55,752 nucleotides of DNA from Macrostomum lignano (lineage: Eukaryota). Positions 1 to 44,122 of the stretch are shown here, one piece after another. Position 1 is the stretch's first letter. Every line of letters begins with the position of its first letter. The notes beneath the pieces are model-generated. The model did not search any database. It was not told the DNA's origin and saw nothing but the letters and a program-made list of their open reading frames with translations. The stretch is taken from the NCBI GenBank assembly GCA_002269645.1, contig NIVC01000167.1, positions 46,877 to 102,628 of the forward strand, written 5' to 3'. The translations under genes and the position numbers were made by a program.

Positions 1-3000
1 CTCCCTAGCAGTGCTGGTGGTACACGCTCCTCCTCGAAGTGGGCCGCCTCCTCCTCCCAGCTGACGCACTCTTCCGCGTACACGTACATCTTGTCGAAGG
101 CTTCGTGCTCCTGCAACAAGCCTCGCTCATCAGGCACTGGCAGGTCGGCTTCTTCTGCGGATGGCTTCTTCTTCGCCTCTTCCTCAACGGCCTCGAAGAA
201 GTGCTTCTTCTCCTCTCGCCGCCAGAGCTCTTCCTCCCTAGCCAGTGCTGGTGGTACACGCTCCTCCTCGAAGTGGGCCGCCTCCTCCTCCCAGCTGACG
301 CACTCTTCCGCGTACACGTACATCTTGTCGAAGGCTTCGTGCTCCTGCAACAAGCCTCGCTCATCAGGCACTGGCAGGTCGGCTTCTTCTGCGGATGGCT
401 TCTTCTTCGCCTCTTCCTCAACGGCCTCGAAGAAGTGCTTCTTCTCCTCTCGCCGCCAGAGCTCTTCCTCCCTAGCCAGTGCTGGTGGTACACGCTCCTC
501 CTCGAAGTGGGCCGCCTCCTCCTCCCAGCTGACGCACTCTTCCGCGTACACGTACATCTTGTCGAAGGCTTCGTGCTCCTGCAACAAGCCTCGCTCATCA
601 GGCACTGGCAGGTCGGCTTCTTCTGCGGATGGCTTCTTCTTCGCCTCTTCCTCAACGGCCTCGAAGAAGTGCTTCTTCTCCTCTCGCCGCCAGAGCTCTT
701 CCTCCCTAGCCAGTGCTGGTGGTACACGCTCCTCCTCGAAGTGGGCCGCCTCCTCCTCCCAGCTGACGCACTCTTCCGCGTACACGTACATCTTGTCGAA
801 GGCTTCGTGCTCCTGCAACAAGCCTCGCTCATCAGGCACTGGCAGGTCGGCTTCTTCTGCGGATGGCTTCTTCTTCGCCTCTTCCTCAACGGCCTCGAAG
901 AAGTGCTTCTTCTCCTCTCGCCGCCAGAGCTCTTCCTCCCTAGCCAGTGCTGGTGGTACACGCTCCTCCTCGAAGTGGGCCGCCTCCTCCTCCCAGCTGA
1001 CGCACTCTTCCGCGTACACGTACATCTTGTCGAAGGCTTCGTGCTCCTGCAACAAGCCTCGCTCATCAGGCACTGGCAGGTCGGCTTCTTCTGCGGATGG
1101 CTTCTTCTTCGCCTCTTCCTCAACGGCCTCGAAGAAGTGCTTCTTCTCCTCTCGCCGCCAGAGCTCTTCCTCCCTAGCCAGTGCTGGTGGTACACGCTCC
1201 TCCTCGAAGTGGGCCGCCTCCTCCTCCCAGCTGACGCACTCTTCCGCGTACACGTACATCTTGTCGAAGGCTTCGTGCTCCTGCAACAAGCCTCGCTCAT
1301 CAGGCACTGGCAGGTCGGCTTCTTCTGCGGATGGCTTCTTCTTCGCCTCTTCCTCAACGGCCTCGAAGAAGTGCTTCTTCTCCTCTCGCCGCCAGAGCTC
1401 TTCCTCCCTAGCCAGTGCTGGTGGTACACGCTCCTCCTCGAAGTGGGCCGCCTCCTCCTCCCAGCTGACGCACTCTTCCGCGTACACGTACATCTTGTCG
1501 AAGGCTTCGTGCTCCTGCAACAAGCCTCGCTCATCAGGCACTGGCAGGTCGGCTTCTTCTGCGGATGGCTTCTTCTTCGCCTCTTCCTCAACGGCCTCGA
1601 AGAAGTGCTTCTTCTCCTCTCGCCGCCAGAGCTCTTCCTCCCTAGCCAGTGCTGGTGGTACACGCTCCTCCTCGAAGTGGGCCGCCTCCTCCTCCCAGCT
1701 GACGCACTCTTCCGCGTACACGTACATCTTGTCGAAGGCTTCGTGCTCCTGCAACAAGCCTCGCTCATCAGGCACTGGCAGGTCGGCTTCTTCTGCGGAT
1801 GGCTTCTTCTTCGCCTCTTCCTCAACGGCCTCGAAGAAGTGCTTCTTCTCCTCTCGCCGCCAGAGCTCTTCCTCCCTAGCCAGTGCTGGTGGTACACGCT
1901 CCTCCTCGAAGTGGGCCGCCTCCTCCTCCCAGCTGACGCACTCTTCCGCGTACACGTACATCTTGTCGAAGGCTTCGTGCTCCTGCAACAAGCCTCGCTC
2001 ATCAGGCACTGGCAGGTCGGCTTCTTCTGCGGATGGCTTCTTCTTCGCCTCTTCCTCAACGGCCTCGAAGAAGTGCTTCTTCTCCTCTCGCCGCCAGAGC
2101 TCTTCCTCCCTAGCCAGTGCTGGTGGTACACGCTCCTCCTCGAAGTGGGCCGCCTCCTCCTCCCAGCTGACGCACTCTTCCGCGTACACGTACATCTTGT
2201 CGAAGGCTTCGTGCTCCTGCAACAAGCCTCGCTCATCAGGCACTGGCAGGTCGGCTTCTTCTGCGGATGGCTTCTTCTTCGCCTCTTCCTCAACGGCCTC
2301 GAAGAAGTGCTTCTTCTCCTCTCGCCGCCAGAGCTCTTCCTCCCTAGCCAGTGCTGGTGGTACACGCTCCTCCTCGAAGTGGGCCGCCTCCTCCTCCCAG
2401 CTGACGCACTCTTCCGCGTACACGTACATCTTGTCGAAGGCTTCGTGCTCCTGCAACAAGCCTCGCTCATCAGGCACTGGCAGGTCGGCTTCTTCTGCGG
2501 ATGGCTTCTTCTTCGCCTCTTCCTCAACGGCCTCGAAGAAGTGCTTCTTCTCCTCTCGCCGCCAGAGCTCTTCCTCCCTAGCCAGTGCTGGTGGTACACG
2601 CTCCTCCTCGAAGTGGGCCGCCTCCTCCTCCCAGCTGACGCACTCTTCCGCGTACACGTACATCTTGTCGAAGGCTTCGTGCTCCTGCAACAAGCCTCGC
2701 TCATCAGGCACTGGCAGGTCGGCTTCTTCTGCGGATGGCTTCTTCTTCGCCTCTTCCTCAACGGCCTCGAAGAAGTGCTTCTTCTCCTCTCGCCGCCAGA
2801 GCTCTTCCTCCCTAGCCAGTGCTGGTGGTACACGCTCCTCCTCGAAGTGGGCCGCCTCCTCCTCCCAGCTGACGCACTCTTCCGCGTACACGTACATCTT
2901 GTCGAAGGCTTCGTGCTCCTGCAACAAGCCTCGCTCATCAGGCACTGGCAGGTCGGCTTCTTCTGCGGATGGCTTCTTCTTCGCCTCTTCCTCAACGGCC

Positions 3001-4590
3001 TCGAAGAAGTGCTTCTTCTCCTCTCGCCGCCAGAGCTCTTCCTCCCTAGCCAGTGCTGGTGGTACACGCTCCTCCTCGAAGTGGGCCGCCTCCTCCTCCC
3101 AGCTGACGCACTCTTCCGCGTACACGTACATCTTGTCGAAGGCTTCGTGCTCCTGCAACAAGCCTCGCTCATCAGGCACTGGCAGGTCGGCTTCTTCTGC
3201 GGATGGCTTCTTCTTCGCCTCTTCCTCAACGGCCTCGAAGAAGTGCTTCTTCTCCTCTCGCCGCCAGAGCTCTTCCTCCCTAGCCAGTGCTGGTGGTACA
3301 CGCTCCTCCTCGAAGTGGGCCGCCTCCTCCTCCCAGCTGACGCACTCTTCCGCGTACACGTACATCTTGTCGAAGGCTTCGTGCTCCTGCAACAAGCCTC
3401 GCTCATCAGGCACTGGCAGGTCGGCTTCTTCTGCGGATGGCTTCTTCTTCGCCTCTTCCTCAACGGCCTCGAAGAAGTGCTTCTTCTCCTCTCGCCGCCA
3501 GAGCTCTTCCTCCCTAGCCAGTGCTGGTGGTACACGCTCCTCCTCGAAGTGGGCCGCCTCCTCCTCCCAGCTGACGCACTCTTCCGCGTACACGTACATC
3601 TTGTCGAAGGCTTCGTGCTCCTGCAACAAGCCTCGCTCATCAGGCACTGGCAGGTCGGCTTCTTCTGCGGATGGCTTCTTCTTCGCCTCTTCCTCAACGG
3701 CCTCGAAGAAGTGCTTCTTCTCCTCTCGCCGCCAGAGCTCTTCCTCCCTAGCCAGTGCTGGTGGTACACGCTCCTCCTCGAAGTGGGCCGCCTCCTCCTC
3801 CCAGCTGACGCACTCTTCCGCGTACACGTACATCTTGTCGAAGGCTTCGTGCTCCTGCAACAAGCCTCGCTCATCAGGCACTGGCAGGTCGGCTTCTTCT
3901 GCGGATGGCTTCTTCTTCGCCTCTTCCTCAACGGCCTCGAAGAAGTGCTTCTTCTCCTCTCGCCGCCAGAGCTCTTCCTCCCTAGCCAGTGCTGGTGGTA
4001 CACGCTCCTCCTCGAAGTGGGCCGCCTCCTCCTCCCAGCTGACGCACTCTTCCGCGTACACGTACATCTTGTCGAAGGCTTCGTGCTCCTGCAACAAGCC
4101 TCGCTCATCAGGCACTGGCAGGTCGGCTTCTTCTGCGGATGGCTTCTTCTTCGCCTCTTCCTCAACGGCCTCGAAGAAGTGCTTCTTCTCCTCTCGCCGC
4201 CAGAGCTCTTCCTCCCTAGCCAGTGCTGGTGGTACACGCTCCTCCTCGAAGTGGGCCGCCTCCTCCTCCCAGCTGACGCACTCTTCCGCGTACACGTACA
4301 TCTTGTCGAAGGCCTCGTGCTCCTGCAACAAGCCTCGCTCATCAGGCACTGGCAGGTCGGCTTCTTCTGCGGATGGCTTCTTCTTCGCCTCTTCCTCAAC
4401 GGCCTCGAAGAAGTGCTTCTTCTCCTCTCGCCGCCAGAGCTCTTCCTCCCTAGCCAGTGCTGGTGGTACACGCTCCTCCTCGAAGTGGGCCGCCTCCTCC
4501 TCCCAGCTGACGCACTCTTCCGCGTACACGTACATCTTGTCGAAGGCCTCGTGCTCCTGCAACAAGCCTCGCTCATCAGGCACTGGCAGG
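1..4590. repeat. 234-bp coding tandem repeat, ~19.6 near-identical copies
   Basis: Exact 234-nt periodicity. One T/C variant in the two rightmost copies and a 1-bp deletion at ~9-10 (ctagcagt vs ctagccagt). Confidence 0.97.
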
Positions 4591-6071
4591 TTGGCCTTTT
4601 TTGCTTGTTTTCTAATTGCCTTAAAAATTTGCTTCTTTTGTAAGGGTTCGGCGATTGAGAGCGTGACTTCGTATTCAGTAACAAGGATGTGTTGAAGTTC
4701 TTGTAGTTCTGAATCGACGATGGAGCCCGTCATGATAATTTTTTTTTCTCCTTTTTTTGCTTGCTGAGTTTTTAATGGGACTAAGCTTTGTTCGAGTAGA
4801 ATGTAATTTTCATCTACGTGTTCACTTATTAGATTCGAATAGAGTTCTGGAATGGATTGGATAATGTTTATTTGTTGTTCCACTTGATGGCTCAGAATAA
4901 CGTTCGGTGTTATTTTTCTGAGTTCGTCTGGTTGTAACATCGTCGTAGCAGCATCGGTGAACTCAGCGCTTCCACAGTCCGGGCTTGAAACTTTGCTGCC
5001 TTTTGTAGTTTGTAGTTCGTCGACTTTTTTAACCGATTCGTTTCTTGTCTCAGTTGTGGAAAATTCTTCAAATAATGACACAGTTGCTTCATATTCAGTA
5101 ATTGTTGTTTGCTGAACGATAAGCTGTTCAGGCTTAGTAAGCAATGCCATCATAGGAACTGGTTCATGGACATCTGTAGCTTCCACCATCTCTTCTTGGA
5201 AATCACTGTTGAAAGTGTGTAGGTGCTGCTGAGCTTGAAGGTAATGGTCATTTACTTGTTCTTGAATTAGTGTCCAAGAATCTGCTCGAACAGATTCACG
5301 ATTATTTTTTGGATGTTGAACCTGATGGTTGACAACAAGAGTACTGCTTAGTGCTGTCTGTTCCTCATCTTTTAACACAGAGATCCACTCAACCTCAAGA
5401 GTCTCCCACTCAGTGGCACATGAAGAGCCGCTTGCACTTTTATTCTGAGACAATATCACTCTATTTACCAGTTCATTGTTGCCAGACGCCTCAGTACCCC
5501 AGTGGCCTAACCAATATTTAGGTTCCTTTGTTTTTTGAGCTTCTTTTTCTACTGGCTTCGAATGAGCTTCCGATTGGGCGCTTGTCGCGATGTTTTTGCT
5601 CATTGCACTTTCGTTGCTGGGGCGAAGTCGAACTGAGCATAGCGGGCTAATCTGGTTTTCTAGTGAGCAGCGCAGACGAAAGAAGAGAGACTGGCTTCCT
5701 GTGGCAATGCTTGGTTGATTTTGTCTGGACTCGACTGTCTGTCTGAGTGGCATTTGTTCCAAAGCTTGCGGATGCTGCCTTGCACCAAATGACCGCTGAC
5801 TATCGACATCGTGCTCTGTAGAAACTGGAGCAGCCTGATTCTTACTGACACTCCTGTGATGGGTTGGAGCCGATTCAGACCGTGTTTCGGTCGCAATCGC
5901 AAACTGCGAATGATGTAGTTGTGGTGCTCGTTCTGATCGATAATTGCTAATGATGATTGGCAAAGGGATAGGCGGCGGTTGAGTATTTGGCAGAGCGAGT
6001 CTCACTTTCAGCTTTTTTGTACTTCTATCGCGGCGAATTCCTGGTTGATTGAAGTATTGCGCGACGCTGAA
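1..6071 (-). CDS. Giant acidic tandem-repeat protein, partial (3' end beyond left edge). About 500 aa of polar unique sequence is followed by ~19.6 x 78-aa repeats (LPVPDERGLLQEHEAFDKMYVYAEECVSWEEEAAHFEEERVPPALAREEELWRREEKKHFFEAVEEEAKKKPSAEEAD)
   Basis: Manual translation of the minus frame whose codons occupy + positions 3n..3n+2 gives no stop from 6071 to the window edge (upstream in-frame TGA at 6072-6074; first ATG at 5753). The frame stays open across ~1.5 kb of AT-rich non-repetitive DNA (4590-6071). The only internal unit variant (4313, 4547) is synonymous in this frame (GAA/GAG). The true 5' exon structure is unresolved. Confidence 0.8.
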
Positions 6072-7575
6072 TCACTGCGCGTAGAATCAATTGTGCAGAG
6101 CAATCGAAGCTCGGCCGTGCAGGTTTGATTAGACTCCTGTATTCGAACTTTGATTGGGTTCCTATGGTAATCGAAATCAGTAGTGGAATTTTTGTCGCCA
6201 GTAGAAGTACTTACAGCATTGAAATCACAACTAAACTCGTCTTCGACTCGAGAATCGGTCTCAGCGAAGCTCGGATGAATTCGATTTTGCTTACTTTTTC
6301 TTCGTTTCATTTGTTGAAACTTTGGTTGTCAAGAAGAGAATTCCTGAAATGGGTTATTTGAACGGATGCGTGCAAAATAAAGCAGAAAAATGTAAAACTT
6401 ACATGAACAGGCAATGTCGCTTTCTGGTCTGGAAATGTTAGTTAATTAAATAAAGGTAAAAATGAGATTAACTCTACTGTTTACGCAGAATGTGAGCTTT
6501 TATTACAAGCAGCTACGCTGATTGCTTTCAAGGCGCAAGCATTTAACTGTTAGTTCAACCCACAGACGTTTTCTGTTGAGATTCTTTCTCAGGAATTCCT
6601 TGGTTTTCTTGATAAAAATATTCAATGCATTCGTTAAACCAACGAAGACCAAAATGCAAATTTTTCCCTTTAGTTTTTGAAGAGGATGCAATTTTTTTCC
6701 TTTCGTTTTTGATGAGGACGCACTTTTTCAGATTATACAGCACGGACTACTAGCAATCGGCCGCCAGAGTTTTGTCAGTTGTCTGATTTCTCACTTTTCC
6801 GAATTTTCCCAAATGCCATCATGATCCTTCTACTGAATTTGTCCTTTGGGGTCGTACTATAAAGATGTCGTAGCGTAAGTTCGATCGTACGTCGGAACTT
6901 TTACACTGCGGAGATAGGAGCCAAGAACGATCTTATCTGGCCGGGGATCTCAGCTCTTCTTGTATTTCTAAGCTGTGTGCTCTTGCATGGTTCCATTGAT
7001 AACCAATTCATAGCTGATGAATAATCAGCTTTGAAAAATGTGTGTTTTCTAGTGCTCCCAGCTACAAGACAGTAAAACACGAATTTGGAACAGAAACGAA
7101 AAGGGCCTCTAAACACGGCTTTTTAAAATTGTATAACAAATTCCAGTGCTTCTTAAAAAAACAGGAAAAGCAGTCTTGATTTAAATAAAAATTAGAACTT
7201 TTTCTTTAAAATGAGTTTACTTTTAATTCTATTACGACAACATATTAAATGCACATTGTTTTGATTCATCTTCAACAACATTAGCTATCAGTAAGAGTAC
7301 TATGACGACCTTTAGACTTGTCACTTTATCCAACCAACCAGCCAAGTAAAAATAAATTGAGAACCGAAAACGGAAGTATTATACATTAATAAGTCAAATT
7401 CAAACTTTATTCGAAGATATTTCATTACATTTACTTCTCATTCAACTTTTTTTAGCAATTGTAAGCTTGTTTTCAACCTACCAATTATAGCCTGCATATA
7501 TTAAATACTCACTTCAACAATACTTAGTTCGTTATTAATTGACTCTCCAAAAGGCTTACTAACCTGAACTGAACC

Positions 7576-10500: not shown

Positions 10501-13500
10501 TATTAGTAATCAAAGCAAATTGTCCTTACAAGTTCTAGCTTAGTATTGATAAATACATTTTACTACTATGCAGGGTAAAATAGTATTTTTATCTTAAAAA
10601 TAATACAAGTTTAACATATTTAAGTCCACAATCTCTTAAATATGGCTATACATTCATAGATGACAATAATTGGCAAAATTATTGTTTTACCAATGCTTAT
10701 CCATGCTATCCAATTGCTGATTTTAGTCGCAGGTCCCGCTGTTTGTAAACAGACTGGATTCCACTCAGTCTGTTCTGCCATACGAGTATGACAGGTGAGC
10801 CCCCGCAGTCACGGTTCTGCTAAGCTGAGCTTAGTCTGCCTGTGCTCAATTCCGTTTTTTATATCATTAACTTAACTATCCACAGGTTCGACTTCTGCGA
10901 GTCGCCAAGCGACTCGTCCAGCCCGGTTGAGAACCTCGGCCAGGTTGTGTTTGGCGAGCGAATCCGGCCAAGCCCTTACACTGTGAACTTTCTCAAGGAG
11001 GTCAACTGCAAACTCGTCTGCACAAAAGAGTATACTAAAGAGTCCAAGTCTAGTCTGGAGAAGCTGCAGTTTCTGAGGAATAGCATCATATTGAACTACC
11101 AGCACCACTGGATCATGGACAATCTGCCTGTTACCTGGTGCTATACGGTTGACAGCGGGCAGCAGTTCTGCGCGCCCGGCTTCCCTGTTGGTTGCTATGT
11201 GACCGAGAAAGGCGAACGGCGCGACGCCTGCTCAACTAGTTCCAGGTCTGCCTCACTGCACTCTTTCCCAATAGTTTCGGCTTTTTTTAGTCCCTATGAC
11301 ATCATACATGCGCAACCTTGGGAATCACTCGGCCGTTTCTATTGGCAACACACGCATGTAATTCGCTATTGACTGAGAGCAATCACGTGACTACTATTCC
11401 GTCCAATAGCGACTTACATGTGTGTGTTGCCAATAGAAACGGCCGGGTGAATCCCTAGGTTGCGCCCAAGCATGTGAGGTGGGGTGGAGAAAGTTTTGTT
11501 TGGAGATTGGTCGGTTGCTGTCACCAGTGAGGTGGGGCGGATTCCACGTTTGAATTCCCGCCGGCGTTGCGTTCGCACGAATAAATCCGGAGCGTCGCAC
11601 AGACGAATCACAACGAAATTCTTTCTGCTGTTTTACTCCGACTGCCGGGGGTCCTCAAATCCCGGGGGGAGGGTAGTTGTCATCGTAGCGGAGCGGTCGT
11701 TTCTGACACCGTAAATTAATGTGTCGATTTGTTAAACTGATTACTTTCAGTAGGGTAGAGCTGCCACCACCGTAATTTACGTATTACGGAACGAATAGGT
11801 CCCAGAGCTTTCTTTGAGTTGATAACTTTAATTGTTTTACGCCCCGTGGGCAAATGACTAAGATAGACTATGGCTTGATTGATTAACGAATAAATATGGT
11901 GTAATTTATTAGGTATTTGGTTATTATTAAACAGCAGGTTTGAAATAAATTGAAGGTTATTAATATTACTATTGCTTTAATAAATTTACGACTGAAAAGA
12001 TTTCATGAGCGCCGGGGCGCTAAATATCAACTAAATAAAATAAAAGGCAAGTTACGTAAGCTAGTGTTGGTCGCACGAAGAAAATGCGAGTGCGGGAAAA
12101 CACGTTAAGCAGTTAGCCGGTGAGGAGGGGAAGGAGAGAAAAGAGAGAGAGAGAGAGTGAGAGTTTTTGTTTGGAGACACTAGCAATGAGCTGTTTAATA
12201 TTAGTGAAACGCATGTCAAGACATTGGTTGGATCAACGGTTGGGCATGCTTCTGGACAATAATTACAGCGCGTGGTCGAGGCACTGGACGGCCTTAAAAC
12301 TGAAGGAAACGGTTGGGCATGCTTCTGGACAAAAATTACAGCGCGTGGTCGAGGCACTGGACGGCCTTAAAACTGAAGGAAACGGTTGGGCATGCTTCTG
12401 GACAAATATTACAGCGCGTGGTCGAGGCACTGGACGGCCTTAAAACTGAAGGAAACGGTTGGGCATGCTTCTGGACAAAAATTACAGCGCGTGGTCGAGG
12501 CACTGGACGGCCTTAAAACTGAAGGAAACGGTTGGGCATGCTTCTGGACAAAAATTACAGCGCGTGGTCGAGGCACTGGACGGCCTTAAAACTGAAGGAA
12601 ACGGTTGGGCATGCTTCTGGACAAATATTACAGCGCGTGGTCGAGGCACTGGACGGCCTTAAAACTGAAGGAAACGGTTGGGCATGCTTCTGGACAAAAA
12701 TTACAGCGCGTGGTCGAGGCACTGGACGGCCTTAAAACTGAAGGAAACGGTTGGGCATGCTTCTGGACAAATATTACAGCGCGTGGTCGAGGCACTGGAC
12801 GGCCTTAAAACTGAAGGAAACGGTTGGGCATGCTTCTGGACAAATATTACAGCGCGTGGTCGAGGCACTGGACGGCCTTAAAACTGAAGGAAACAGAAAA
12901 ATTTAACAAAATGTCCAGTGGGAGGAGGATGAATTTCCAGAAAAAGGATGCAAAACCTCCACTGGGCGGTCCGTCGGCGGGACCAAACAGGGGAAACAAA
13001 TCAAATAGTGGACAAAAAATAAAGAAAACTTTTCGCATGCATTTCAAAGTTACTAAATTTGTTAATCAAAGTCAAAGTGGCATCCCACCTGCCACACATG
13101 TATGAGATCCGAATTAGGGTCGGGTAATTTCGGATCTCAGATCTTAAAGTCAATCGAATCTGTTTCCTTGCCCAACTTTTGAATTGGATCAATGGAAAGA
13201 ATAGTCAGTATGGACATACTTTATCGAGACAAATAATAAAAACGGATCTAGTTTTCTATTCTTTATTTGTTAGGATTAAATGTAAAGTTCTTACACCCGC
13301 TTAGAAATAAATGATAATAACAATTCTGCTTCAGGTTACACCAAAAATGCTGCAGAGTCTTTTAATGCTCAAATTTCCAACTGTGAAGCCTATTTGGCAT
13401 TATTGATAGATCTTAGCCTCCAGCCCACCATAAGTTTTATGTCAATCTGTGTGCCTCAGGCGACTGTCGCACATAAATGCGATGGAGAGCGTAAAAATGC

Positions 13501-16500
13501 GTTGTTATAAATGCGAAATCCGATTCTAATTCATAAAGTGACGCAGTTGAGCTTTATATGCAACTCAGTGATTCCACAGCGACTCCAGCACGCCTCATAT
13601 GCGACCCTACGGCCCCAGTCATTATAGTAGCGCCTCAGAGTCACTTGCGTCGCCATAGGGTCGTTTCAGAGTCGCAGACAATCAAACGACTCTTTGACAA
13701 CTTTCTGGCAACTTACCGTGACATCTCGTCGTTTAGAGTCGTCTAGACTCACTTCTTTCCTATTTTACCTGTGTTACCTGCAACGACTTTGGGCGACGCA
13801 AGTGACTCTGGGATACTACTTGGCCTAGTTACCGTTTTCATCGGGTATTCTATCGCCCATAGTAACTCGCCTCGCTCTGCAGGTACAGCTCGCCGAACAC
13901 GGTGTACCTGTTCAACCATGTGCAGCTGGTGATCTCCTATCACAGCAGCGCCGAGGAAAGCTGGGGCGCCGGAATCTCCGGTCGCGGCGGGAGGATCATC
14001 TCGGTTAAAGCGCTTGTGCAAAGCTACAAGCACAGTGGCAAGGATTCTATACGATGCAACGATCAGACTCCTCCGTTAGGCATCTCGGCTACAAGCAGCG
14101 ACCTGCCGGAGCCAGTTAAAGTGTTCTACACCTACAGCGTGTCTTACAAGCAGGATAATAGCGTTCGCTGGAGCTCCCGCTGGGATTATATCCTGGAATC
14201 CATGCCGCACTCCAATATCCAGTGGTTTAGCATTCTAAACTCGCTAGTCATAGTCCTGTTCCTAAGCGGCATGGTTGCTATGATCCTGCTGCGCACTCTG
14301 CACAGGGACATCTCTCGCTACAACCAGCAGGAGGCGCACGAAGAGGCCCAAGAAGAATTCGGCTGGAAGCTGGTGCACGGCGACGTGTTCCGGCCGCCAG
14401 CCAAGGGTATGCTGCTCAGCGTGTTCCTAGGCAACGGAGTCCAGATCCTGTGCATGTCGCTCATCACGCTGGCCTTCGCCTGTCTCGGCTTTCTCAGTCC
14501 GGCCAATCGCGGCGCCCTCATGACCTGCGCCATGGTGCTGTACGTCCTGCTGGGCACACCGGCTGGCTACGTGTCCGCCAGAATCTACAAGATGTTTGGC
14601 GGCCTGCGCTGGAAGCTGCACGTCTTATTAACTGCGCTGCTGTGCCCCGGCCTGGTGTTTGCCATCTTCTTCGTGCTTAACCTGGTGCTGTGGGCTAAGG
14701 GCAGCTCGGCCGCTGTGCCGTTTAGCACTATTGTTGCCATCCTGGCTCTCTGGTTCCTCGTCTCCGTTCCGCTCTGCTTTCTAGGCGCTTATTTCGGTTT
14801 TAAGAAGCCGCCGATAGAGCATCCGGTTCGCACTAATCAGATACCCAGACAGATCCCCGACCAGAGCTTCTACACGAGGCCCCTGCCCGGCATTCTAATG
14901 GGCGGCATCCTGCCATTCGGCTGCATCTTCATCCAGCTGTTCTTCATTCTGAACTCGATCTGGGGCTCCGATGTGAGTTCGCCTACCTGTATTTCTGCTA
15001 CCTCTGTGACCTTCAATGTGACACCGCTACCCCCTGTGACATTCAATGTGATAACACTACCCCCCTGTGACCTTCAATATGATACCGCTACCCCCTGTGA
15101 CCTTCAATGTGATACCGCTATGCCTTTGACCTTCAATGTGATACCGCTATCCCTTTGACCTTCAATGTGATACCGCTACCCCCTGTGACCTTCAATGTGA
15201 CACCGCTACCCCTGTGACCTTCAATGTGATACCGCTACCCCCTGTGATCTTCAATGTGATACCGCTACCCTTGTGACCTTAAATGCCTCCCTTGAACGGA
15301 GATATAATATAGTTTCAAATGTCTTCTGTGATAAAATAAGCAAGCAAAAATAAACCTCACTGCTTCTTTAAAACCGATTTCTACTTAACCAGGTGTACTA
15401 CATGTTCGGCTTCCTGTTCCTGGTGTTCCTCATCTTGCTTGTGACCTGCTCGGAGGCCACCATTCTGCTGTGCTATTTCCACCTGTGCGCAGAGGACTAT
15501 CACTGGTGGTGGCGCGCCTTCCTCACGGCCGGGTGCACAGCCATGTACCTGTTCCTCTATTCCGTGCACTATTTCTTCGCCAAGATGGAGTTGAGCGGCG
15601 CCGCTTCTACTTTCCTGTACTTCGGCTACACCTTCATCATTGTGCTGCTGTTTTTCCTTTTCACAGGTGAGGAGCATGCATTTGAGTTTGTTGCAAATAA
15701 AACTTTATTGTGTGCCGATTTCGATAACTGTACTCCGATCCCTGATCTCCCTCAGTTCTCAGTCTGGGCCGCTGTCACCCTCCAGTTCTCAGTCTGGGCC
15801 GCTCTCACCCCCCCCCCATTTCTCAGTCTGGGCCGCTCTCACCCCCCCCCCATTTCTCAGTCTGGGCCGCTGTCACCTCCATTCCTCAGTCTGGGCCGCT
15901 CTCACCCCCCCCCCAGTTCTCAGTCTGGGCCGCTCTCTCCCCCAGTTCTCAGTCTGGGCCGCTCTCTCCCCCAGTTCTCAGTCTGGGCCGCTCTCTCCCC
16001 CCCTCCCCAGTTCTCAGTCTCGGCCGCTCTCTCCCCCAGTTCTCAGTCTGGGCCGCTCTCTCCCCCAGTTCTCAGTTTCGGCCGCTCTCACCCCAATTTT
16101 TCAGTCTGGGCCGCTATTACCCCCAGTTCTCAGTCTGGGCTGCTCTCACCCCCCAGTTCTCAGTCTGGGCTGCTCTCACCCCCCAGTTCTCAGTCTGGGC
16201 TGCTCTCACCCCCCCCCATTTCTCAGTCTGGGCCGCTGTCACCCCCAGTTCTCAGTCTGGACCGCTCTCACCCCTATTTCTCAGGGGCCGCTCTCATCTC
16301 ACCCAGTTCTCAGTCTGGGCCGCTGTCACCCCCCAGTTCTCAGTCTGGGCCGCTCTCACCCCCCCCATTTCTCAGTCTGGGCCGCTGTCACCCCCATTCC
16401 TCAGTCTGGGCCGCTCTCACCCCCATTCCTCAGTCTGGGCCGCTCTCACCCCCCCCCCCCCAGTTCTCAGTCTGGGCCGCTCTCTCCCCCAGTTCTCAGT

Positions 16501-19870: not shown

Positions 19871-20510
19871 TGGCGCCTCTTGATGCTGGCGCCTCTTGAT
19901 GCTGGCGCCACTTGGTGCTGGCGCCTCGGTGCTGGCGCCTCGGTGCTGGCGGCTCGGTGCTGGCGCCTCGGTGCTGGTGCCTCGGTGCTGGCGCCTCGGT
20001 GCTGGCACCACGGTGCTGGCGCCACGGTGCTGGCGCTACGGTGCTGGCGCCACGTGGTGCTGGCGCCTCGGTGCTGGCGCCTCGGTGCTGGCGCCACGGT
20101 GCTGGCGCCACGGTGCTGGCGCCACGGTGCTGGCGCTACGGTGCTGGCGCCACAGTGCTGGCGCTACGGTGCTGGCGCCACGTGGTGCTGGCGCCACGGT
20201 GCTGGCGCCACGGTGCTGGCGCCACGGTGCTGGCACCACGGTGCTGGCGCCACGGTGCTGGCGCCACGGTGCTGGCGCCTCGGTGCTGGCGCAACTTGGT
20301 GCTGGCGCCACTTGGTGCTTGCGCCACTTGGTGCTGGCGCCACGGTGCTGGCGCCTCGGTGCTGGCGCAACTTGGTGCTGGCGCCACTTGGTGCTTGCGC
20401 CACTTGGTGCTTGCGCCACTTGGTGCTTGCGCCACTTGGTGCTGGCGCCACGGTGCTGACGCCACGGTGCTGGCGCCACGGTTCTGGCGCTACGGTGCTG
20501 GCGCCACTTG
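19871..20510. repeat. 14-16-bp satellite with core GGTGCTGGCGCC
   Basis: Direct reading; mixed unit lengths. Confidence 0.9.
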
Positions 20511-24464: not shown

Positions 24465-25224
24465 TGGCGAGTTGGAAAGACCCTGAGAGGACCACTTCTG
24501 GCTGCTTTTTTGAAGAAATTATAAAACTAAAGGCAGCTTATTTGTCACCTTTTGCTTAGCCTAATAAGCCTGTCTGTCTGGCTGGGCTGCCCACACAGTC
24601 CGGGCAGAAAAAAAACCGAATCATAATAGAAATTTTCACAGCGCATGATTAAAAAACTTCGGGATTCCCTCGAGTGGAAACTTATTCAATGTTGAGAAGT
24701 TTTTGCCAAACAACAAACAAGCCTTCTGTGCCTGTGAGCAAGGGGAACTGCCTTACCTGTATACAAATAAACAGGCGAATGCACAACAATTAAGAGCATT
24801 AAGGGCCCCTGCCGACAGCTTTTTCACTTCTTTTCTTCTTCCATTCTTGCTTCTTCTTTCGGAGCTGTTTTTCTTCTATGCAGCTTTTCCCTCCCTCGGT
24901 TCCCTAATTTCGATCTCCATGTCCCCACTGTTCCCCCTGATTAGCGGGGGGTCCGTCTAAATTAAAACTCATATAGGCTATACATTTCAATAGCTCCCGT
25001 TCTGAGCTCAGTTGGGCCGTGAATAATGGGAGCCAATGCTTCTCCGCATTGTGTTAGGAGAGTTATTTCGGCCCTGTAGCTGTGTGCAGGCAGCCTGTCT
25101 GTCTGTAATGTTCCAAATTCTACGAAATTAAATTTGCCTCAACTTAATTTCATTTGTGGCTGTAAGAGTCAAATGCGTTCAAGGTTGCCAAGCAGGTGTT
25201 TGTACTTTGTAATTCTCAATACAT

Positions 25225-25654
25225 GGCGCCCCTGACTCCAGCATTGGCGCACCCCCTGACTCCAGCATTGGCGCACCCCCTGACCCCAGCATCGGCGCCC
25301 CCTGACCCCAGCATCAGCGCCCCCTGACCCCAGCATTGGCGCCCCTGACTCCAGCATTGGCGCCCCCCTGACTCCAGCATAGGCGCCCCCTGACTCCAGC
25401 ATCGGCGCCCCTGACTCCAGCATTGGCGCCCCTGACCCCAGCATTGGCGCACCCCCTGACTCCAGCATCGGCACCCCCTGACTCCAGCATAGGCGCCCCT
25501 GACTCCAGCATTGGCGCCCCCTGACTCCAGCATTGGCGCCCCTGACTCCAGCATTGTCGCCCCTGACTCCAGCATTGGCGCCCCTGAATCCAGCATTGGC
25601 GCCCCTGACCCGAGCATTGGCGCCCCCGACTCCAGCATTGGCGCCCCTGACCCC
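25225..25654. repeat. ~22-bp minisatellite GCGCCCC(C)TGACTCCAGCATTG, ~19 copies
   Basis: Direct reading. Confidence 0.9.
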
Positions 25655-26158
25655 AATAAAGGAGTCCAAAGCAGTCCGGCAACCGAAAGCCGCACGGCAA
25701 GACACCGCAATGCGGAAGGAAGTGACGGAAGGCAGACAAAAGTCGATTCGGGCGCTGCGATTCAGCAGGAGGGCCGGCCCGGCCTCCCACTGTTTAAGGG
25801 GGTCACCGAAACTCTGTGGAGCTGGCTGCGACTGGACCACATGGCAATCAATGTGTATTATTTTCCCATGGGATCTTTGCATCGCATCGCATGGTCAGTC
25901 AGTCAGTCAGTCCAAAATACGCAGCTTCAACTAATGTCCCGCTGATTTCCAATATTGACAATGATCTCTCATTATGCTATGCCCTCCTTGCCTAGTGGTC
26001 CTCATTAGGCCAGGTACACGCGTATATGTTGGCCTTGTTCCATGCTTTGGCGGCCTGCTCCGCTTCAACCGATGCCTATCATAATGGCGGGGTACTTCAT
26101 CTGTCTCCACAACTCGCAGTCCGCAAAAATCACTCTCAGGTTTGACGTTTGGAATTTA

Positions 26159-26534
26159 GGGAACTGTGAAGCTTAGATATTGTGAAGTTTGGATATTGTG
26201 AAATTTGGGGATTGTGAAGTTCGGGGATTGTAACGGTTGGGAACTGTGCAGTTTGGGGTTTGTGAAGTTTGGGGAATGTGAAGTTTGGGGATTGTGACGG
26301 TTGGGGATTGTGAAGTTTGGGGATTGTGACGGTTGGGGATTGTGACGTTTGGGGGTTGTGAAGGTTGGGGATTGTGAAGGTTGGGGATTGTGAAGGTTGG
26401 GGATTGTGAAGGTTGGGGATTGTGAAGGTTGGGGATTGTGAAGGTTGGGGATTGTGAAGGTTGGGGAATGTGAAGTTTGGGGAATGTGAAGTTTGGGGAA
26501 TGTGAAGTTTGGGGATTGTGAAGGTTGGGGATTG
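26159..26534. repeat. 16-bp satellite TTTGGGGATTGTGAAG, ~23 copies
   Basis: Direct reading; same family as 51500-52140 in opposite orientation. Confidence 0.9.
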
Positions 26535-27599
26535 GAAAACACAGGTGACAGGACCTCCTCAGCTTCCTCAATACGTAATGTATGCCACTGAACAGAAGTA
26601 GTGCAGTATACATAGGCTGCCAAGGTGTGAATTAGCTTTTCAACGACATGACAGCCAACGAGTTAGCTGAAGAAACAATTATATTTATTGTTAACATTAA
26701 TATCGAGGTTATAATTAATTTACAGATGCAACAAGAATCTGCAGTTCATAAAGTGCTCGGGTAAAACATGCAAATTTCAAGCGGAGGGAACCAGTTATTT
26801 GGACTGACAACACGGACATAACGGGGGCGACAATTTTGAAGGAAAGTCTTGACAGGAAATTCGACCCTGTAAAAACACGGCTGATGACAGGACCAGCCAG
26901 CGGATGGTTTCACAGCAGCCACTTTTAAACAACAGCAACAACAAAAATTTGCGAATCTTTTTCAGTCTTCGCAATTGCCGTTGCAGCAGGTGAAAATTGC
27001 AAATGTTTTTCTTTGTTTAAGCCACACTCTGTGCAGTTGCCATGCCGAAGATGTTCGAGTTTCGGAAATTTAGACTATATATGTGGTCATAGGCAGCATA
27101 TTCTTTGGGATCAATGTGGGACACAACTAGGCTGGCTGTGTTCCCTCTGCGCACTTCAGGTGAGCCAACATAGGAGAGGAGAATTCTCCCCTCCTGCGCC
27201 GCTAAAAGCTGTTAGGGTTAACTTAACCTATAAGGAAAAGTTGCTAAAAGACAGAATAAATTAAAACAAAAAATCTTCTTTATGAACCTGAAGGCCTTTA
27301 TAACTGCGCGGGGCCAACACGAGATCAGGCGAGTGGAACACAATGAATACGACTAGAAATCTGGAGGCTACAGTCTTAGACACAGAAAATTGAAAATTAA
27401 TATGCAGATTATATTATTCAAACAGTGCGGGACCAAGAGACTGAACGCCATCTGCTTCGAGGGCACTTAAAGACGCGCGAATAAGCAAAACTTATGGAAA
27501 ATGTTTGCTGTTTAGAAGTTTAAAACAGTTCACTTTGTGTGCACAATTGTTCCGCTCTGCATTTCGCAGCCGCGCTGGAAACAGGGGAGGCTGGAAGCC

Positions 27600-28988
27600 T
27601 CATCTCTGGCTGGGCAGCTGCGGCAACATGCACGGTGGGTACAGCGGAACCCGGAGGAACGGCGCCCAGCCTCCGGCCTGTGCCGCTGCTGCCGCCGCCG
27701 CAGCCGCAGCCACTGCCGCCGAATTCGACGATGTCGCAGCTGTTGGAACGCCGCTCGACGAGGTCGACGACGGCGAGGGCTGCTGCTGCGGCGACTGCGA
27801 CTGAGCAGCTGCAGCGGCTCGGCGGCAGGCCAAGTCCAGCGGGCTGCCGTGGTGCAGCGGGTGCCCGCCAGGCCCGTGGAGCATCGACGATGCTGGCGGA
27901 GGCGGCGGAGGCGGCGGCGGCCCGTGGTGAGGCTGGTGGTAGGCACCAGGCGGCAGATAGCCGGCAGCGGCAGCAGCGGCAGCGGCAGCGGCAAAGCCGA
28001 GCGGATGCGGCGGCGGGTACGGCAGGCGCGGCAGCCCCGGCCATTCCGGGTGGCCGCCGACGCCGCCGATAACTCCGCCAGGACCGACGCCCATTCCGCC
28101 GCCGCCTCCGCCGGTTCCACCGCCGCCGCCGCCGCCTCCGCCAGGCGGAAGGAGGCCGCAGCGCAGGCCGAAAAGGCGCGACCGCTGCAGCGAAGTGGTC
28201 CGCCGGCGCAGCTTGCCGGTGGTGCCGCCGATGTACACATCGTCGCAGGACGGGTCCAGCATCCAGTAGTTGCCCTTGCCCGGGTCGTCGTAGCTCCTCG
28301 GCACCTTGACGAAGCACTTGTTGAGGGACAGGTTGTGCCGGATGGAGTTCTGCCAGCCCTGCTTGTTCTCCCTGTAGTAGGGGAAGTTTCTCACGATGAA
28401 CTCGTAGATGCCGTTGAGGGTGAGCTTCTTCTCTGCGCTGCTCCGGATGGCCATCATGATGAGCGCATTGTAGCTGAAGGGCGGCTTCTCGTGGCCGCGC
28501 GGCCCGTCTTTGCCGGCCTCGCCGTCCGACGATTTTCCAACGCCGGCGGTGGACTCGTCCGGCTTCTCCGAGCCGCCGACGTCTTTGAGCAGCCGCTCCT
28601 CGTCGGTGGCCTCGGCGGCCTCCTCTTCTTCCTCTTCGTCTTCTGCGGCGGCTTCTTCAGTCGCTGTGTTGTCGCCGGATTCCTCAGCGGTTCGTCGGCA
28701 TGGCAGCTTCGAAGCGGCGACCAAATCGTCGTCGTCGTCGTCTTGCGGCGCCCGGCGCCGGAGATGGCGCTGGCGACGCCGAGTGTTGCGCCTCTTGACT
28801 GCCGACTCAGCCCGCGCTGGCGCCGGAAGCTGCGGTGGCGTCGGCAAGGGCGGCAGGCCGCCGTCGCTGTCACTGCAGCCGCCGTCGTCGCCACTGCTGG
28901 CGCCGCTGTCAACGCCGAGCATGTTGCGGATGGAGAAGCTGCTGACAAAGCGGCTCAGCTGCTGCTGCTGCGGGCTGCGCATCGCCAT
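27600..28988 (-). CDS. FOXG1: Forkhead box G transcription factor (BF-1/sloppy-paired class), single exon, 462 aa
   Basis: Forkhead domain [15 protein letters not shown]...[35 protein letters not shown] followed by the FoxG-specific [11 protein letters not shown]; N-terminal eh1 motif FSIRNML. Confidence 0.95.
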
Positions 28989-29094
28989 AGTTCTGTGACT
29001 GGGATCGGGGAAGATTGCGCTTACCTCCTATGGGAAGAAGGAATTTTCCAGGTGAATCGGAGTGAAGTGTCACCTGGGCTGGGAATTTGGGCGC

Positions 29095-29192
29095 CTTTTT
29101 AGTCTGAAATGCCCGCCCCCTGCGCCGCCCCACCCCGCCCACCTTTAGCTGGCGAGGGCCAATCGGAGAGGCGCGCCAATGAGGCTGGGCGG
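29095..29192 (-). promoter_or_regulatory. Candidate FoxG proximal promoter: GC boxes and CCAAT boxes
   Basis: CCGCCC at 29113, 29125 and 29135, GGGCGG at 29187, CCAAT at 29159 and 29176, all 110-200 bp upstream of the ATG. TSS not determined. Confidence 0.45.
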
Positions 29193-31062: not shown

Positions 31063-32730
31063 TCAGCTACACCCAGAATGGGGCCCATAGCTCAGCTACA
31101 GTACACCCAGAATGGGGCCCATAGCTCAGCTACAGTACACCCAGAATAGGGCCCATAGCTCAGCTACAGTACACCCAGAATAGGGCCCATAGCTCAGTTA
31201 CAGTACACCCAGAATAGGGCCCATAGCTCAGCTACAGTACACCCAGAATAGGGCCCATAGCTCAGCTACAGTACACCCAGAATAGGGCCCATAGCTCAGC
31301 TACAGTACACCCAGAATAGGGCCCATAGCTCAGCTACAGTACACCCAGAATAGGGCCCATAGCTCAGCTACAGTACACCCAGAATAGGGTCCATAGCTCA
31401 GCTACAGTACACCCAGAATGGCGCCCCATAGCTCAGCTACAGTACACCCAGAATGGCGCCCCATAGCTCAGCTACAGTACACCCAGAATGGCGCCCCATA
31501 GCTCAGCTACAGTACACCCAGAATGGCGCCCCATAGCTCAGCTACAGTACACCCAGAATGGCGCCCCATAGCTCAGCTACAGTACACCCAGAATGGCGCC
31601 CCATAGCTCAGCTACAGTACACCCAGAATGGCGCCCCATAGCTCAGCTACAGTACACCCAGAGTGGCGCCCCATAGCTCAGCTACAGTACACCCAGAATG
31701 GCGCCCCATAGCTCAGCTACAGTACATCCAGAATAGGGCCCATAGCTCAGCTACAGTACACCCAGAATGGCGCCCCATAGCTCAGCTACAGTACACCCAG
31801 AATGGCGCCCCATAGCTCAGCTACAGTACACCCAGAATGGCGCCCCATAGCTCAGCTACAGTACACCCAGAATGGCGCCCCATAGCTCAGCTACAGTACA
31901 CCCAGAATGGCGCCCCATAGCTCAGCTACAGTACACCCAGAATGGCGCCCCATAGCTCAGCTACAGTACACCCAGAATGGCGCCCCATAGCTCAGCTACA
32001 GTACACCCAGAATGGCGCCCCATAGCTCAGCTACAGTACACCCAGAATAGGGCCCATAGCTCAGCTACAGTACACCCAGAATAGGGCCCATAGCTCAGCT
32101 ACAGTACACCCAGAATGGCGCCCCATAGCTCAGCTACAGTACACCCAGAATGGCGCCCCATAGCTCAGCTACAGTACACCCAGAATGGCGCCCCATAGCT
32201 CAGCTACAGTACACCCAGAGTGGCGCCCCATAGCTCAGCTACAGTACACCCAGAATGGCGCCCCATAGCTCAGCTACAGTACACCCAGAATGGCGCCCCA
32301 TAGCTCAGCTACAGTACACCCAGAATGGCGCCCCATAGCTCAGCTACAGTACATCCAGAATAGGGCCCATAGCTCAGCTACAGTACACCCAGAATGGCGC
32401 CCCATAGCTCAGCTACAGTACACCCAGAATGGCGCCCCATAGCTCAGCTACAGTACACCCAGAATGGCGCCCCATAGCTCAGCTACAGTACACCCAGAAT
32501 GGCGCCCCATAGCTCAGCTACAGTACACCCAGAATGGCGCCCCATAGCTCAGCTACAGTACACCCAGAATGGGCCCCATAGCTCAGCTACAGTACACCCA
32601 GAGTGGCGCCCCATAGCTCAGCTACAGTACACCCAGAATGGCGCCCCATAGCTCAGCTACAGTACACCCAGAATGGCGCCCCATAGCTCAGCTACAGTAC
32701 ACCCAGAATGGCACCCCTAGCTCAGCTACA
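31063..32730. repeat. 34/35-bp satellite CCCAGAAT(GGCGCC/AGGGC)CCATAGCTCAGCTACAGTACA, ~48 copies
   Basis: Direct reading; two variants occur in blocks. Confidence 0.95.
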
Positions 32731-41450: not shown

Positions 41451-41805
41451 GTGCTGGCGCCTCTGGTGCTGGCGCCTCTGGTGCTGGCGCCTCTGGTGCT
41501 GGCGCCTCTGGTGCTGGCGCCTCTGGTGCTGGCGCCTCTGGTGCTGGCGCCTCTGGTGCTGGCGCCTCTGGTGCTGGCGCCTCTGGTGCTGGCGCCTCTG
41601 GTGCTGGCGCCTCTGGTGCTGGCGCCTCTGGTGCTGGCGCCTCTGGTGCTGGCGCCTCTGGTGCTGGCGCCTCTGGTGCTGGCGCCTCTGGTGCTGGCGC
41701 CTCTGGTGCTGGCGCCTCTGGTGCTGGCGCCTCTGGTGCTGGCGCCTCTGGTGCTGGCGCCTCTGGTGCTGGCGCCTCTGGTGCTGGCGCCTCTGGTGCT
41801 GGCGC
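41451..41805. repeat. Perfect 15-bp satellite GTGCTGGCGCCTCTG, ~23.7 copies
   Basis: No variants seen. Confidence 0.97.
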
Positions 41806-42354: not shown

Positions 42355-42903
42355 TTCATAAACCTCAACCTTCACAAACCTCAACCTTCACAAACCTCAA
42401 CCTTCATAAACCTCAACCTTCACAAACCTCAACCTTCACAAACCTCAACCTTCACAAACTTCAACCTTCACAAACCTCAACCTTCACAAACCTCAACCTT
42501 CATAAACCTCAACCTTCACAAATCTCAACCTTCACAAATCTCAACCTTCACAAACCTCAACCGTCACAAACCTCAACCTTCACAAATCTCAACCTTCACA
42601 AACCTCAACCTTCACAAACCTCAACCTTCACAAACCTCAACCTTCACAAACCTCAACCTTCACAAACCTCAACCTTCACAAACTTCAACCTTCACAAACC
42701 TCAACCTTCACAAACCTCAACCGTCACAAACCTCAACCTTCACAAATCTCAACCTTCACAAACCTCAACCTTCACAAACCTCAACCTTCACAAACCTCAA
42801 CCTTCACAAACCTCAACCTTCACAAACCTCAACCTTCACAAACCTCAACCTTCACAAATCTGAACCTTCACAAACCTCAATCTTCACAAACCTCAACCTT
42901 CAA
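42355..42903. repeat. 16-bp satellite AAACCTCAACCTTCAC, ~34 copies
   Basis: Direct reading. Confidence 0.92.
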
Positions 42904-43091: not shown

Positions 43092-44122
43092 TCATACCAG
43101 GCCGTGAGAGTCCAGGCCGAGCTTGCGCTGCAGGTCTAACATCACCCGGTCGAACTCCGACTCCAGTTGGCCACCGCGCTGCTCCGCGGCCGACACCTCC
43201 GCTGCCAGTCGGTCCGCCTGCTGCTGCTGCGCCTGCTGCTGCTGACCGCGCCGTCTGCCAGATGGGACGAGACGCCCGGAGGCCAGGCGCTGCTGCTGTT
43301 GCTGCTGCTGATTCCTGACTGAGAAGCCGCCGCTCTCCACCGCCGACCCGCCGCCGCGCTCGAACTTCAACGGCCGCTCGCCGATCACGGAGACGCCGGC
43401 GGGCCCCGACGGAATCGGCGTCGGCGGTATTGACGAAGACGACGACGAGGACTGCTGACGTCGCCGCTGCTCAGCCGGGCCGCCAGTGCGGGGCCGTTGC
43501 CGCCCGCCGCCGATTGACGAATTCGGACGCGGAGGCGGCGGGCAAGCGGCCGACTGGACGCGGGCGTTGGCGCGGGCCATCAGGCTCTGCGGGTCGAACA
43601 GGTCGTCTGGAGGCTGCGGCGGTGGTGCCGGTGCCGGCATCCGCGGTGATACGCGGGCAACTGGCGCGCCCGAAGCTGGCAAGACGAGGTCGCGGACTCG
43701 AATCCCCGTTGCTGAAGCCCCGGTACCACCGCTGCCGCCGCCAAAGTGGCTGGCATTGCCGGACGTCGGTCGAAATGAGACTCGGCGCTTCTGGGTGTCC
43801 CAGGCGGCTCGGAGCTCCTCCTGGCTGAGCAGGTCTTCCAGCTGAGACACGCGACGGCGGAGGGCTTCTTTCTGCTCGTGAGAGAGCAGCAACGTCGATG
43901 CCGACGGCTCCAAGTCTTCCACCGCCGCTTCGCCAGTCCAGTTGACGGCGTCAGCCAGCTGGTCGGTGGCCTCCTGGCTGCCGGCCCAGGCGGCGCGGAC
44001 CAGCGCCACCACTGTGGCCAGTTGAGTGCGCAGCTCGGCGGCTTCGTGTTCCAGCTGCTGGATTCGCCTGCGGCTGTCTGCGCCGTCGCCGGCGTTTGGC
44101 GAAGCTGGTCGCTGCTGCATCT
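43092..44122 (-). CDS. Uncharacterised protein exon (342 aa from first ATG) with N- and C-terminal coiled-coil-like segments and a Pro/Gly/Gln-rich linker; probably a terminal exon
   Basis: Long GC-rich ORF with the same codon style as the known genes. Heptad-like RRIQQLEHEAAELRTQLATVV and LAAEVSAAEQRGGQLESEFDRVMLDLQRKL. Acceptor-like CTGCAG immediately 5' (44123-44128). Upstream exons were not resolved. Confidence 0.7.

Follow-up and report, generated by a model that had tools for sequence, protein, structure and literature searches.

A candidate giant polyanionic tandem-repeat protein encoded by an orphan locus of the flatworm Macrostomum lignano

A 55,752-nucleotide stretch of the Macrostomum lignano scaffold NIVC01000167.1 (assembly GCA_002269645.1; positions 46,877 to 102,628, hereafter the window) contains at its left end a very long minus-strand reading frame that runs through an array of acidic units of 78 amino acids (aa). 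This frame probably encodes an orphan, intracellular, polyanionic helical tandem-repeat protein. It would form the 5' part of a single, very large gene that apparently has only one exon and is confined to M. lignano, and the product of which would consist of a mostly disordered, 574-aa N-terminus lacking a signal peptide, followed by at least 42 identical acidic units. Each unit is predicted to fold into two amphipathic α-helices of 35 and 28 residues, separated by a VPP kink and followed by a 13-residue Pro-containing linker. Judged from this architecture, the most plausible role would be that of an intracellular polyanionic rod, spacer or scaffold, the length of which is set by the copy number of the unit; the protein would be neither an enzyme nor a secreted glue. 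The repeat core appears to have been expanded or homogenized very recently.

The array occupies positions 1 to 4595 of the window on the minus strand and has a period of 234 bp (Tandem Repeats Finder, TRF: 19.6 copies, 99% matches), comprising 19 full units and a 143-nucleotide partial unit that is cut by a scaffold gap. Over 15,753 shared bases, the scaffold sequence and the window match with 0 mismatches; window position 1 corresponds to scaffold position 46,877, the window ends where the scaffold ends, and a run of 2221 N lies directly to the left of position 1. As the minus-strand frame runs off at this assembly gap, the left edge is not a biological gene end, and the number of units in the window is a lower bound. 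All 19 full units have the same sequence, save for an A/G difference in units 1 and 2 (unit position 42) that exchanges GAA and GAG and is synonymous in the frame considered here. The array is young or strongly homogenized. The unit composition given in an original prediction, made from the letters of the window, was exact: 22 Glu, 3 Asp, 6 Lys and 5 Arg (net charge -14), one Cys, LPVP and VPP hinges and the block EEELWRREEKKHFFEAVEEEAKKK. Pro accounts for 5 of the 78 residues, and the unit has a mass of 9.3 kDa and a pI of 4.5. The tryptic peptides of the array would include GLLQEHEAFDK, MYVYAEECVSWEEEAAHFEEER and HFFEAVEEEAK. An origin of the unit by duplication of two 39-aa halves was considered and is not supported (z = -0.2).

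From 6071 to 3, the minus-strand frame comprises 2023 sense codons and no stop, in agreement with the original prediction; as also recognized there, it was missing from the program-made list of open reading frames (ORFs) because it reaches the end of the window. Position 6071, which had been taken as its start, proved to be an artefact of a 1-bp deletion. A MAFFT alignment of the window copy with the copies on scaffolds NIVC01003104.1 and NIVC01000770.1 places the missing G at ~6029 to 6030 on the minus strand (CGCCGC-GAT versus CGCCGCGGAT); either an error of the assembly or a genuine frameshift may account for the deletion. The probable start codon is the ATG at 6308 to 6310 (minus strand; MKRRKSKQ..., the N-terminal sequence beginning MKRRKSKQNRIHPSF), from the equivalent of which both other copies read through (product P0002). 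An in-frame TGA is located 7 codons upstream, at 6329 to 6331. In the window copy, the first ~94 codons (MKRRK...INQEFAA; 6030 to 6310, minus strand) lie in a different frame from the rest and are carried by the ORF at 6008 to 6310 (minus strand), whereas they are continuous in the other two copies, in which the full unique N-terminus measures 574 aa.

Residues 95 to 574 of this N-terminus are encoded in the window by a unique, Ser/Thr/Gln/Glu-rich part (4590 to 6029, minus strand; 480 codons). This stretch provides the strong evidence for the frame: it is open over its 480 codons, compared with a mean of 98 and a maximum of 251 in 1000 dinucleotide shuffles, and it enters the array in frame, with 574 codons in the paralogous copies. 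The motif TEYE(A/V)T, said in the original prediction to occur twice in the unique part, is indeed present twice, and both occurrences belong to a real, diverged duplication of ~65 aa inside this otherwise "unique" segment. Local alignment delimits copy 1 at 5067 to 5270, ending in TEYEATVSLFE, and copy 2 at 4647 to 4832, ending in TEYEVTLSIAE (both minus strand), with a score of 63 compared with 29.8±5.4 and a maximum of 55 in shuffled sequences (n = 500). Descent of the unique part from degenerate 78-aa units was also considered and is not significant; the sole match, of 15 residues, adjoins the array (QKKQIFKAIRKQAKK versus EKKHFFEAVEEEAKK, z = 2.3).

The copies on NIVC01003104.1 (locus L002) and NIVC01000770.1 (L003) are near-identical to that of the window scaffold (L001), with ~99.8% identity and ~6 differing sites in 4.4 kb, most of them indels. 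In L003, the frame stays open for 3856 codons to the end of the flank examined and includes 42 DNA-identical units; loci were extracted with 10-kb flanks, and the number of units in L003 is therefore at least 42. The N-terminus plus 42 units would make a polypeptide of 3850 aa and at least 455 kDa, with a pI of 4.6 and a net charge of about -600. The claim of a modular, acidic and very long tandem-repeat ORF is supported in the frame originally proposed, and the product may be a structural polymer.

The region beyond the array is visible on a fourth scaffold, NIVC01002625.1 (L004/L005), which is gapless here. It contains the 3' end of the 234-bp array (at least 31 units), then ~2.2 kb of degenerate units that can be read only with frame changes, and then a second array. 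The latter is built of 297-bp units encoding 99-aa, Glu/Arg/Asp-rich repeats (...RRRERRRRDERARRDIARAERRFEDDQFKVDEIVQADEEVLVDEDVRHQIDLFDDKVLEDREASEIEEDLPPMRKEDELKAPE), with at least 41 copies, 94% matches and 3% indels. It follows the gap in the window's own scaffold too: leftward extension of the contig, as suggested in the original prediction, leads through the 2221 N into the 297-bp array. In both scaffolds, it has the same orientation as the 234-bp array and lies downstream of it (L001: 17975-20993, beyond the gap; L004: 8461-20423). In the best register, the 99-aa arrays of the two scaffolds share 98% identity, with ~28 gap openings in 3 kb. An annotated 1457-aa protein is also located downstream of the gap. 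A relationship between the 78-aa and 99-aa units was considered and is not significant (E = 2.1).

The 78-aa array thus passes 3' into this second, older array, which is frame-broken in the assemblies, and two options are therefore left for the C-terminus. The protein may end ~100 codons after the 78-aa array, where the frame meets a stop in L004, or it may continue, in which case the frameshifts would be assembly errors. In its boldest form, which we offer as a tentative proposal, the product would be a Macrostomum-specific, megadalton, polyanionic polymer of two-helix units (574 aa, at least 42 x 78 aa and possibly at least 41 x 99 aa), of a type not described before, that arose by very recent in-gene expansion to dozens of DNA-identical 234-bp coding units and serves as a copy-number-tunable intracellular structural element, e.g., in the elaborate sperm or in the cytoskeleton of the epidermis. 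More speculatively, this polymer would be the negatively charged factor by which the duo-gland adhesive organ achieves release.

The main competing explanation, possible but on balance doubtful, is that the array is transcribed but untranslated, or a decaying satellite-like sequence. A purine-rich 234-bp satellite, possibly of coding origin, would then adjoin, or have invaded, the 3' end of an orphan ORF that is itself young. The frame would be open over such a length only as a by-product of a perfectly repeated unit that happens to contain no stops, and no giant protein would exist. The unique ORF of 574 codons, in frame with the array and far longer than shuffled sequence would allow, speaks against this explanation, as do the periods of the two large arrays (234 and 297), both of which are divisible by 3. 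Among the other tandem arrays of the window, most have periods not divisible by 3 (e.g., 73, 29, 31, 14, 23, 16, 35 and 11; TRF). In the unit as well as in the unique part, the proposed frame has the highest codon-usage likelihood, and the codon usage of the array is gene-like: the GC content at third codon positions (GC3) of the unit is 0.76, compared with 0.72 for the neighboring TM9SF gene and 0.80 for the Forkhead gene, and its preferred codons (GAG, AAG, TTC) agree with those of both genes. The encoded peptide would, moreover, have a regular amphipathic two-helix design. A further argument comes from the array itself, in which four of the six frames are open. A stop-free array alone is thus weak evidence, and this property is one that the satellite explanation can claim; but four open frames were reached in none of 1000 shuffles of the unit, which indicates a codon-structured (GAR-rich) sequence rather than a random satellite.

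Support for the proposed frame also comes from the public annotation. The GenBank annotation of the assembly was derived from RNA-seq-guided transcripts using StringTie, TACO and TBONE together with TransDecoder (PMC5730564), and it places partial coding sequences (CDSs) on the minus strand, both across the unique part (P0001/P0002) and within the array. P0001 (331 aa; 4761 to 5753, minus strand) is in the same frame as the giant ORF. P0002 is the paralogue product PAA53306.1/PAA77023.1, deposited as "hypothetical protein BOX15_Mlig022173g3, partial". Annotated pieces of 292, 687, 219 and 175 aa (L001 and L004) and one of 77 aa, all from the array, follow the proposed frame. The protein had been called hidden in the original prediction; this holds in that no intact giant protein is on record, but GenBank does contain partial hypothetical proteins, some of them in the +1 frame. 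As a separate observation, the 90%-identity cluster of P0001 holds a 46-aa JGI/IMG protein, P0003 (MVNMGHIMAVDT...), with no obvious similarity to the other members, which may be a clustering oddity.

Several findings weigh against a translated giant protein. Besides the four open frames, two annotated pieces of the array, of 380 and 526 aa (L001 and L004), are read in the +1 frame; the annotation thus supports the originally proposed frame in several pieces and departs from it in these two. In the public annotation, the array is represented by a series of partial proteins that follow one another and switch between the acidic and the +1 frames. The +1-frame peptide is basic and Ser/Arg/Cys-rich (CQCLMSEACC..., pI 12); it probably results from an artefact of annotation and, as such, contaminates protein databases. 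Constraint cannot be measured in the array, since units with 100% identity and scaffold copies with ~99.8% identity allow no test of the ratio of nonsynonymous to synonymous substitution rates (dN/dS). The window copy is frameshifted at ~6029. The codon usage of the unique part is atypical, as its GC3 of 0.37 and its codons AAA, GAA and TTT are unlike those of the neighboring genes (0.72-0.80), and it has no confident fold, being predicted by AlphaFold2 as mostly disordered with low-confidence helices (mean predicted local distance difference test, pLDDT, 38.9). No expression or proteomic data were found for Mlig022173 and Mlig012748 in full-text searches of the literature and in supplementary files of three M. 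lignano papers. The surroundings also speak for a satellite, since the window is dense in minisatellites (47 TRF rows), and more than half of the M. lignano genome is repetitive, with simple and tandem repeats making up 15% (PMC5730564).

The neutral-looking, frame-broken 297-bp array is the best argument for the satellite explanation. It is interrupted by stops every 150-330 codons, and 14 of the 41 units share one 1-bp deletion of a C, giving "...AARQKSS*". Its substitution variants are spread evenly over the codon positions (24/20/22), 29% of them are synonymous compared with 22% expected at random, and its indels are mostly of 1-2 bp. Taken together, the even codon positions, the synonymous share, the short indels and the shared deletion argue against coding constraint in this array. 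The 99-aa array is either not (or no longer) one ORF, or it may have been corrupted by repeat-induced consensus errors of long-read assemblies.

A sharp compositional break is present inside the single ORF, from a GC3 of 0.37 in the unique part (4590-6029) to 0.76 in the array (1-4595). It could reflect GC-biased conversion in a recombining array or a different origin of the two parts.

Searches for relatives returned only the gene itself, a result that counts against a translated protein and for the satellite explanation. A phmmer search against 1.84 billion representative proteins matched only two M. lignano fragments of the same gene, P0001 and P0005 (the latter matching the sequence of the 78-aa unit), and therefore no homologue among the predicted proteins of other organisms in that set. 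When the unique part and two units were used together in a word-indexed search, the sole match was the annotated fragment of the window itself, and no independent transcript-derived protein was found in a collection of 15 billion proteins. Searches with the 99-aa unit likewise gave M. lignano fragments only. Neither the unique part, nor the 78-aa units, nor the 99-aa units, nor the junction has a valid Pfam match, and both phmmer against PDB sequences and Foldseek against the PDB gave 0 matches. The earlier remark that the repeat was not recognized as any named family holds across the Pfam, PDB, Foldseek and phmmer searches.

The structure of three consecutive units was predicted with AlphaFold2 in single-sequence mode, with a mean pLDDT of 73.7 and a predicted template modeling score (pTM) of 0.19. 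The helices are confidently predicted (means of 10-residue blocks ~73-87), but with so low a pTM the model does not indicate how they are arranged relative to one another. Within each of the three units, the same pattern recurs: a helix of 35 residues, a break at VPP, a helix of 28 residues and the 13-residue Pro-containing linker KKKPSAEEADLPVPD. Both predicted helices bear a stripe of hydrophobic and aromatic residues. On this model, the unit is more consistent with a pair of amphipathic helices than with a single alpha-helix (SAH) exposed to solvent.

An SAH is a long uninterrupted helix, typically of at least 30-40 and often of more than 100 residues, composed almost only of Glu, Lys and Arg (plus Ala or Gln), with dense i to i+4 salt bridges between Glu and Lys or Arg, and it is stable as a monomer in solution. 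The ER/K SAH-like segment described in the original prediction does lie in a predicted helix in which blocks of Glu alternate with Arg or Lys, and a stretch of ~40 aa in the 99-aa unit is richer still in Glu and Arg. The helix is, however, only 28 residues long and bounded by prolines, being delimited by VPP and KKKP, and it is ~67% charged and contains L, W, H, F, F and V. By a simple count of opposite-charge i/i+4 pairs per 21-residue window, the best value is 5 for the 78-aa unit and 6 for the 99-aa unit, compared with 17 for an ideal E4K4 sequence. The classic SAH reading thus fails on helix length and on the presence of aromatic and hydrophobic residues.

A comparison with the PEVK region of titin has a similar outcome. 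Tandem modules containing Glu, Pro, Val and Lys in a giant protein constitute a likeness, but the units here are predicted to be helical rather than disordered or polyproline-like, and only 5 of 78 residues are Pro. Titin-like elasticity, also suggested originally, finds no support, since no PPAK, Ig or Fn3 Pfam match at E <= 1 is present in the parts examined, outside of which the C-terminus lies.

Parallels are also offered by the microtubule-associated repetitive proteins (MARPs) of trypanosomes and mammalian trichohyalin, which are giant, lineage-specific cytoskeletal proteins with near-identical tandem repeats. Like these, the M. lignano protein would combine a very high mass with dozens of near-identical, charged helical units and no signal peptide, and it shares with them a narrow taxonomic range and unit identity that is kept at the DNA level. 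It differs in having no sequence similarity to either and in its 78-aa, two-helix, strongly negative unit.

The acidic helix-loop-helix character of the units also raises the idea of a high-capacity cation (Ca2+) binding protein built of degenerate EF-hand-like units, which we regard as improbable. Five units together score 34.8 bits against the Pfam family EF-hand_15 (PF23617; cut-off 27), with a match that runs from helix 2 through the acidic loop into the beginning of helix 1, and the density of acidic residues is very high. Two units, by comparison, score only 16.4 bits (E = 0.01), under the cut-off, and no stretch of the five is individually significant. Because the cut-off is passed only by summing five identical weak matches, membership in EF-hand_15 was not accepted. 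Furthermore, the loop KPSAEEADLPVPDERG carries three prolines and differs from the canonical 12-residue Ca2+-binding loop, and the Foldseek and phmmer searches of the PDB were empty.

A further idea is that of a secreted polyanion of the duo-gland adhesive system, such as a negatively charged release factor, or of another adhesive or elastic extracellular polymer, and we consider it very improbable. Its appeal lies in the extreme negative charge (-14 per unit) and in the fact that flatworm adhesion models postulate a negatively charged releasing molecule and that the adhesives there are giant, repetitive and encoded by very large exons (PMC9229212). The M. lignano adhesives Mlig-ap1 and Mlig-ap2 resemble the present case in that they come from the same organism and that their genes, which contain very large exons, are giant, repetitive and difficult to assemble (PMC9229212). 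These proteins have Gly/Arg/Lys-rich repetitive regions and lectin, vWD and EGF-type domains, and their flatworm relatives are secreted, Lys-rich and equipped with signal peptides (PMC9229212). The protein described here, in contrast, would be strongly acidic (unit pI 4.5) and has no known domain.

At the ATG-defined N-terminus, a hydropathy scan alone revealed neither a signal peptide nor a transmembrane segment (9-residue maximum 0.61 in the first 48 residues; no 19-residue segment above 0.72), and from 6311 to the TM9SF gene at 7576 there is no sign of an upstream exon that would supply a signal sequence. The lack of a signal peptide, which sets the protein apart from the flatworm relatives of Mlig-ap1 and Mlig-ap2, makes the adhesive role considered in the original prediction unlikely. 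Membership among the flatworm adhesion proteins ap1, ap2 and ap3 was rejected on the same ground, together with the wrong charge and the absence of lectin, vWD, EGF and TSP domains. An intracellular location, as in the favored reading of a polyanionic helical repeat protein, would agree with these features.

No publication or named family covers this gene, for which GenBank holds only partial hypothetical proteins split between frames. As a type, a giant lineage-specific tandem-repeat ORF is familiar in a genome with 15% tandem repeats. If translated, the product would be among the largest proteins of a flatworm used as a model for regeneration and bioadhesion, and it would provide a natural, copy-number-tunable helical polyanion for biophysics. 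Otherwise, the locus would be an ordinary lineage-specific repetitive ORF of a kind common in the highly repetitive M. lignano genome. In either case, it represents an orphan without relatives, and its array, with at least 42 DNA-identical units, is unusually perfect. The locus also illustrates how annotation based on short-read transcripts breaks such genes up into "hypothetical proteins" that are partial and differ in frame. Through this fragmentation, M. lignano gene counts and proteome databases misrepresent the gene.

The neighboring genes are eukaryotic in character. A TM9SF/EMP70 gene extends on the plus strand from 7576 to beyond 15155, divergent from the giant ORF, with its start ~1.26 kb from the ATG of the latter and an annotated product of 660 aa. 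It includes a 430-codon, exon-like ORF at 13866-15155 (plus strand; Pfam EMP70, E = 3.7e-145). The span of this gene contains a 73-bp array of 9 copies (12235-12894), and the end of the 430-codon ORF falls within a 30-bp array (14997-15285). A Forkhead-domain gene that appears to consist of a single exon is located at 27603-29027 on the minus strand (Pfam Forkhead, E = 8.6e-39). An antisense frame of 528 codons is open as well (27516-29099, plus strand), presumably as a by-product of the GC-rich composition. A 352-codon ORF at 43095-44150 (minus strand) has no Pfam match (best Rab11-FIP3, E = 0.27) and lies in a GC-rich stretch, with no tandem array tied to it. Rfam and tRNA scans identified no RNA genes in the window.

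Two features of the minisatellites of the window were also noted. The palindrome GGCGCC is found in four families, with periods of 14, 21, 35 and 15 bp (19900-20507, 25224-25655, 31068-32730 and 41451-41805, respectively), and it occurs 114 times in the window compared with 11.6 expected, a count reached in none of 100 shuffles. In addition, the units of two 16-bp satellites, ATTGTGAAGTTTGGGG (26179-26534) and TCCCCAAACTTCACAA (51499-52141), are exact reverse complements after rotation and thus represent one satellite placed twice, in opposite orientations and at a distance of 25 kb; between the two, at 42355-42902, lies TTCACAAACCTCAACC, a related unit of 16 bp.

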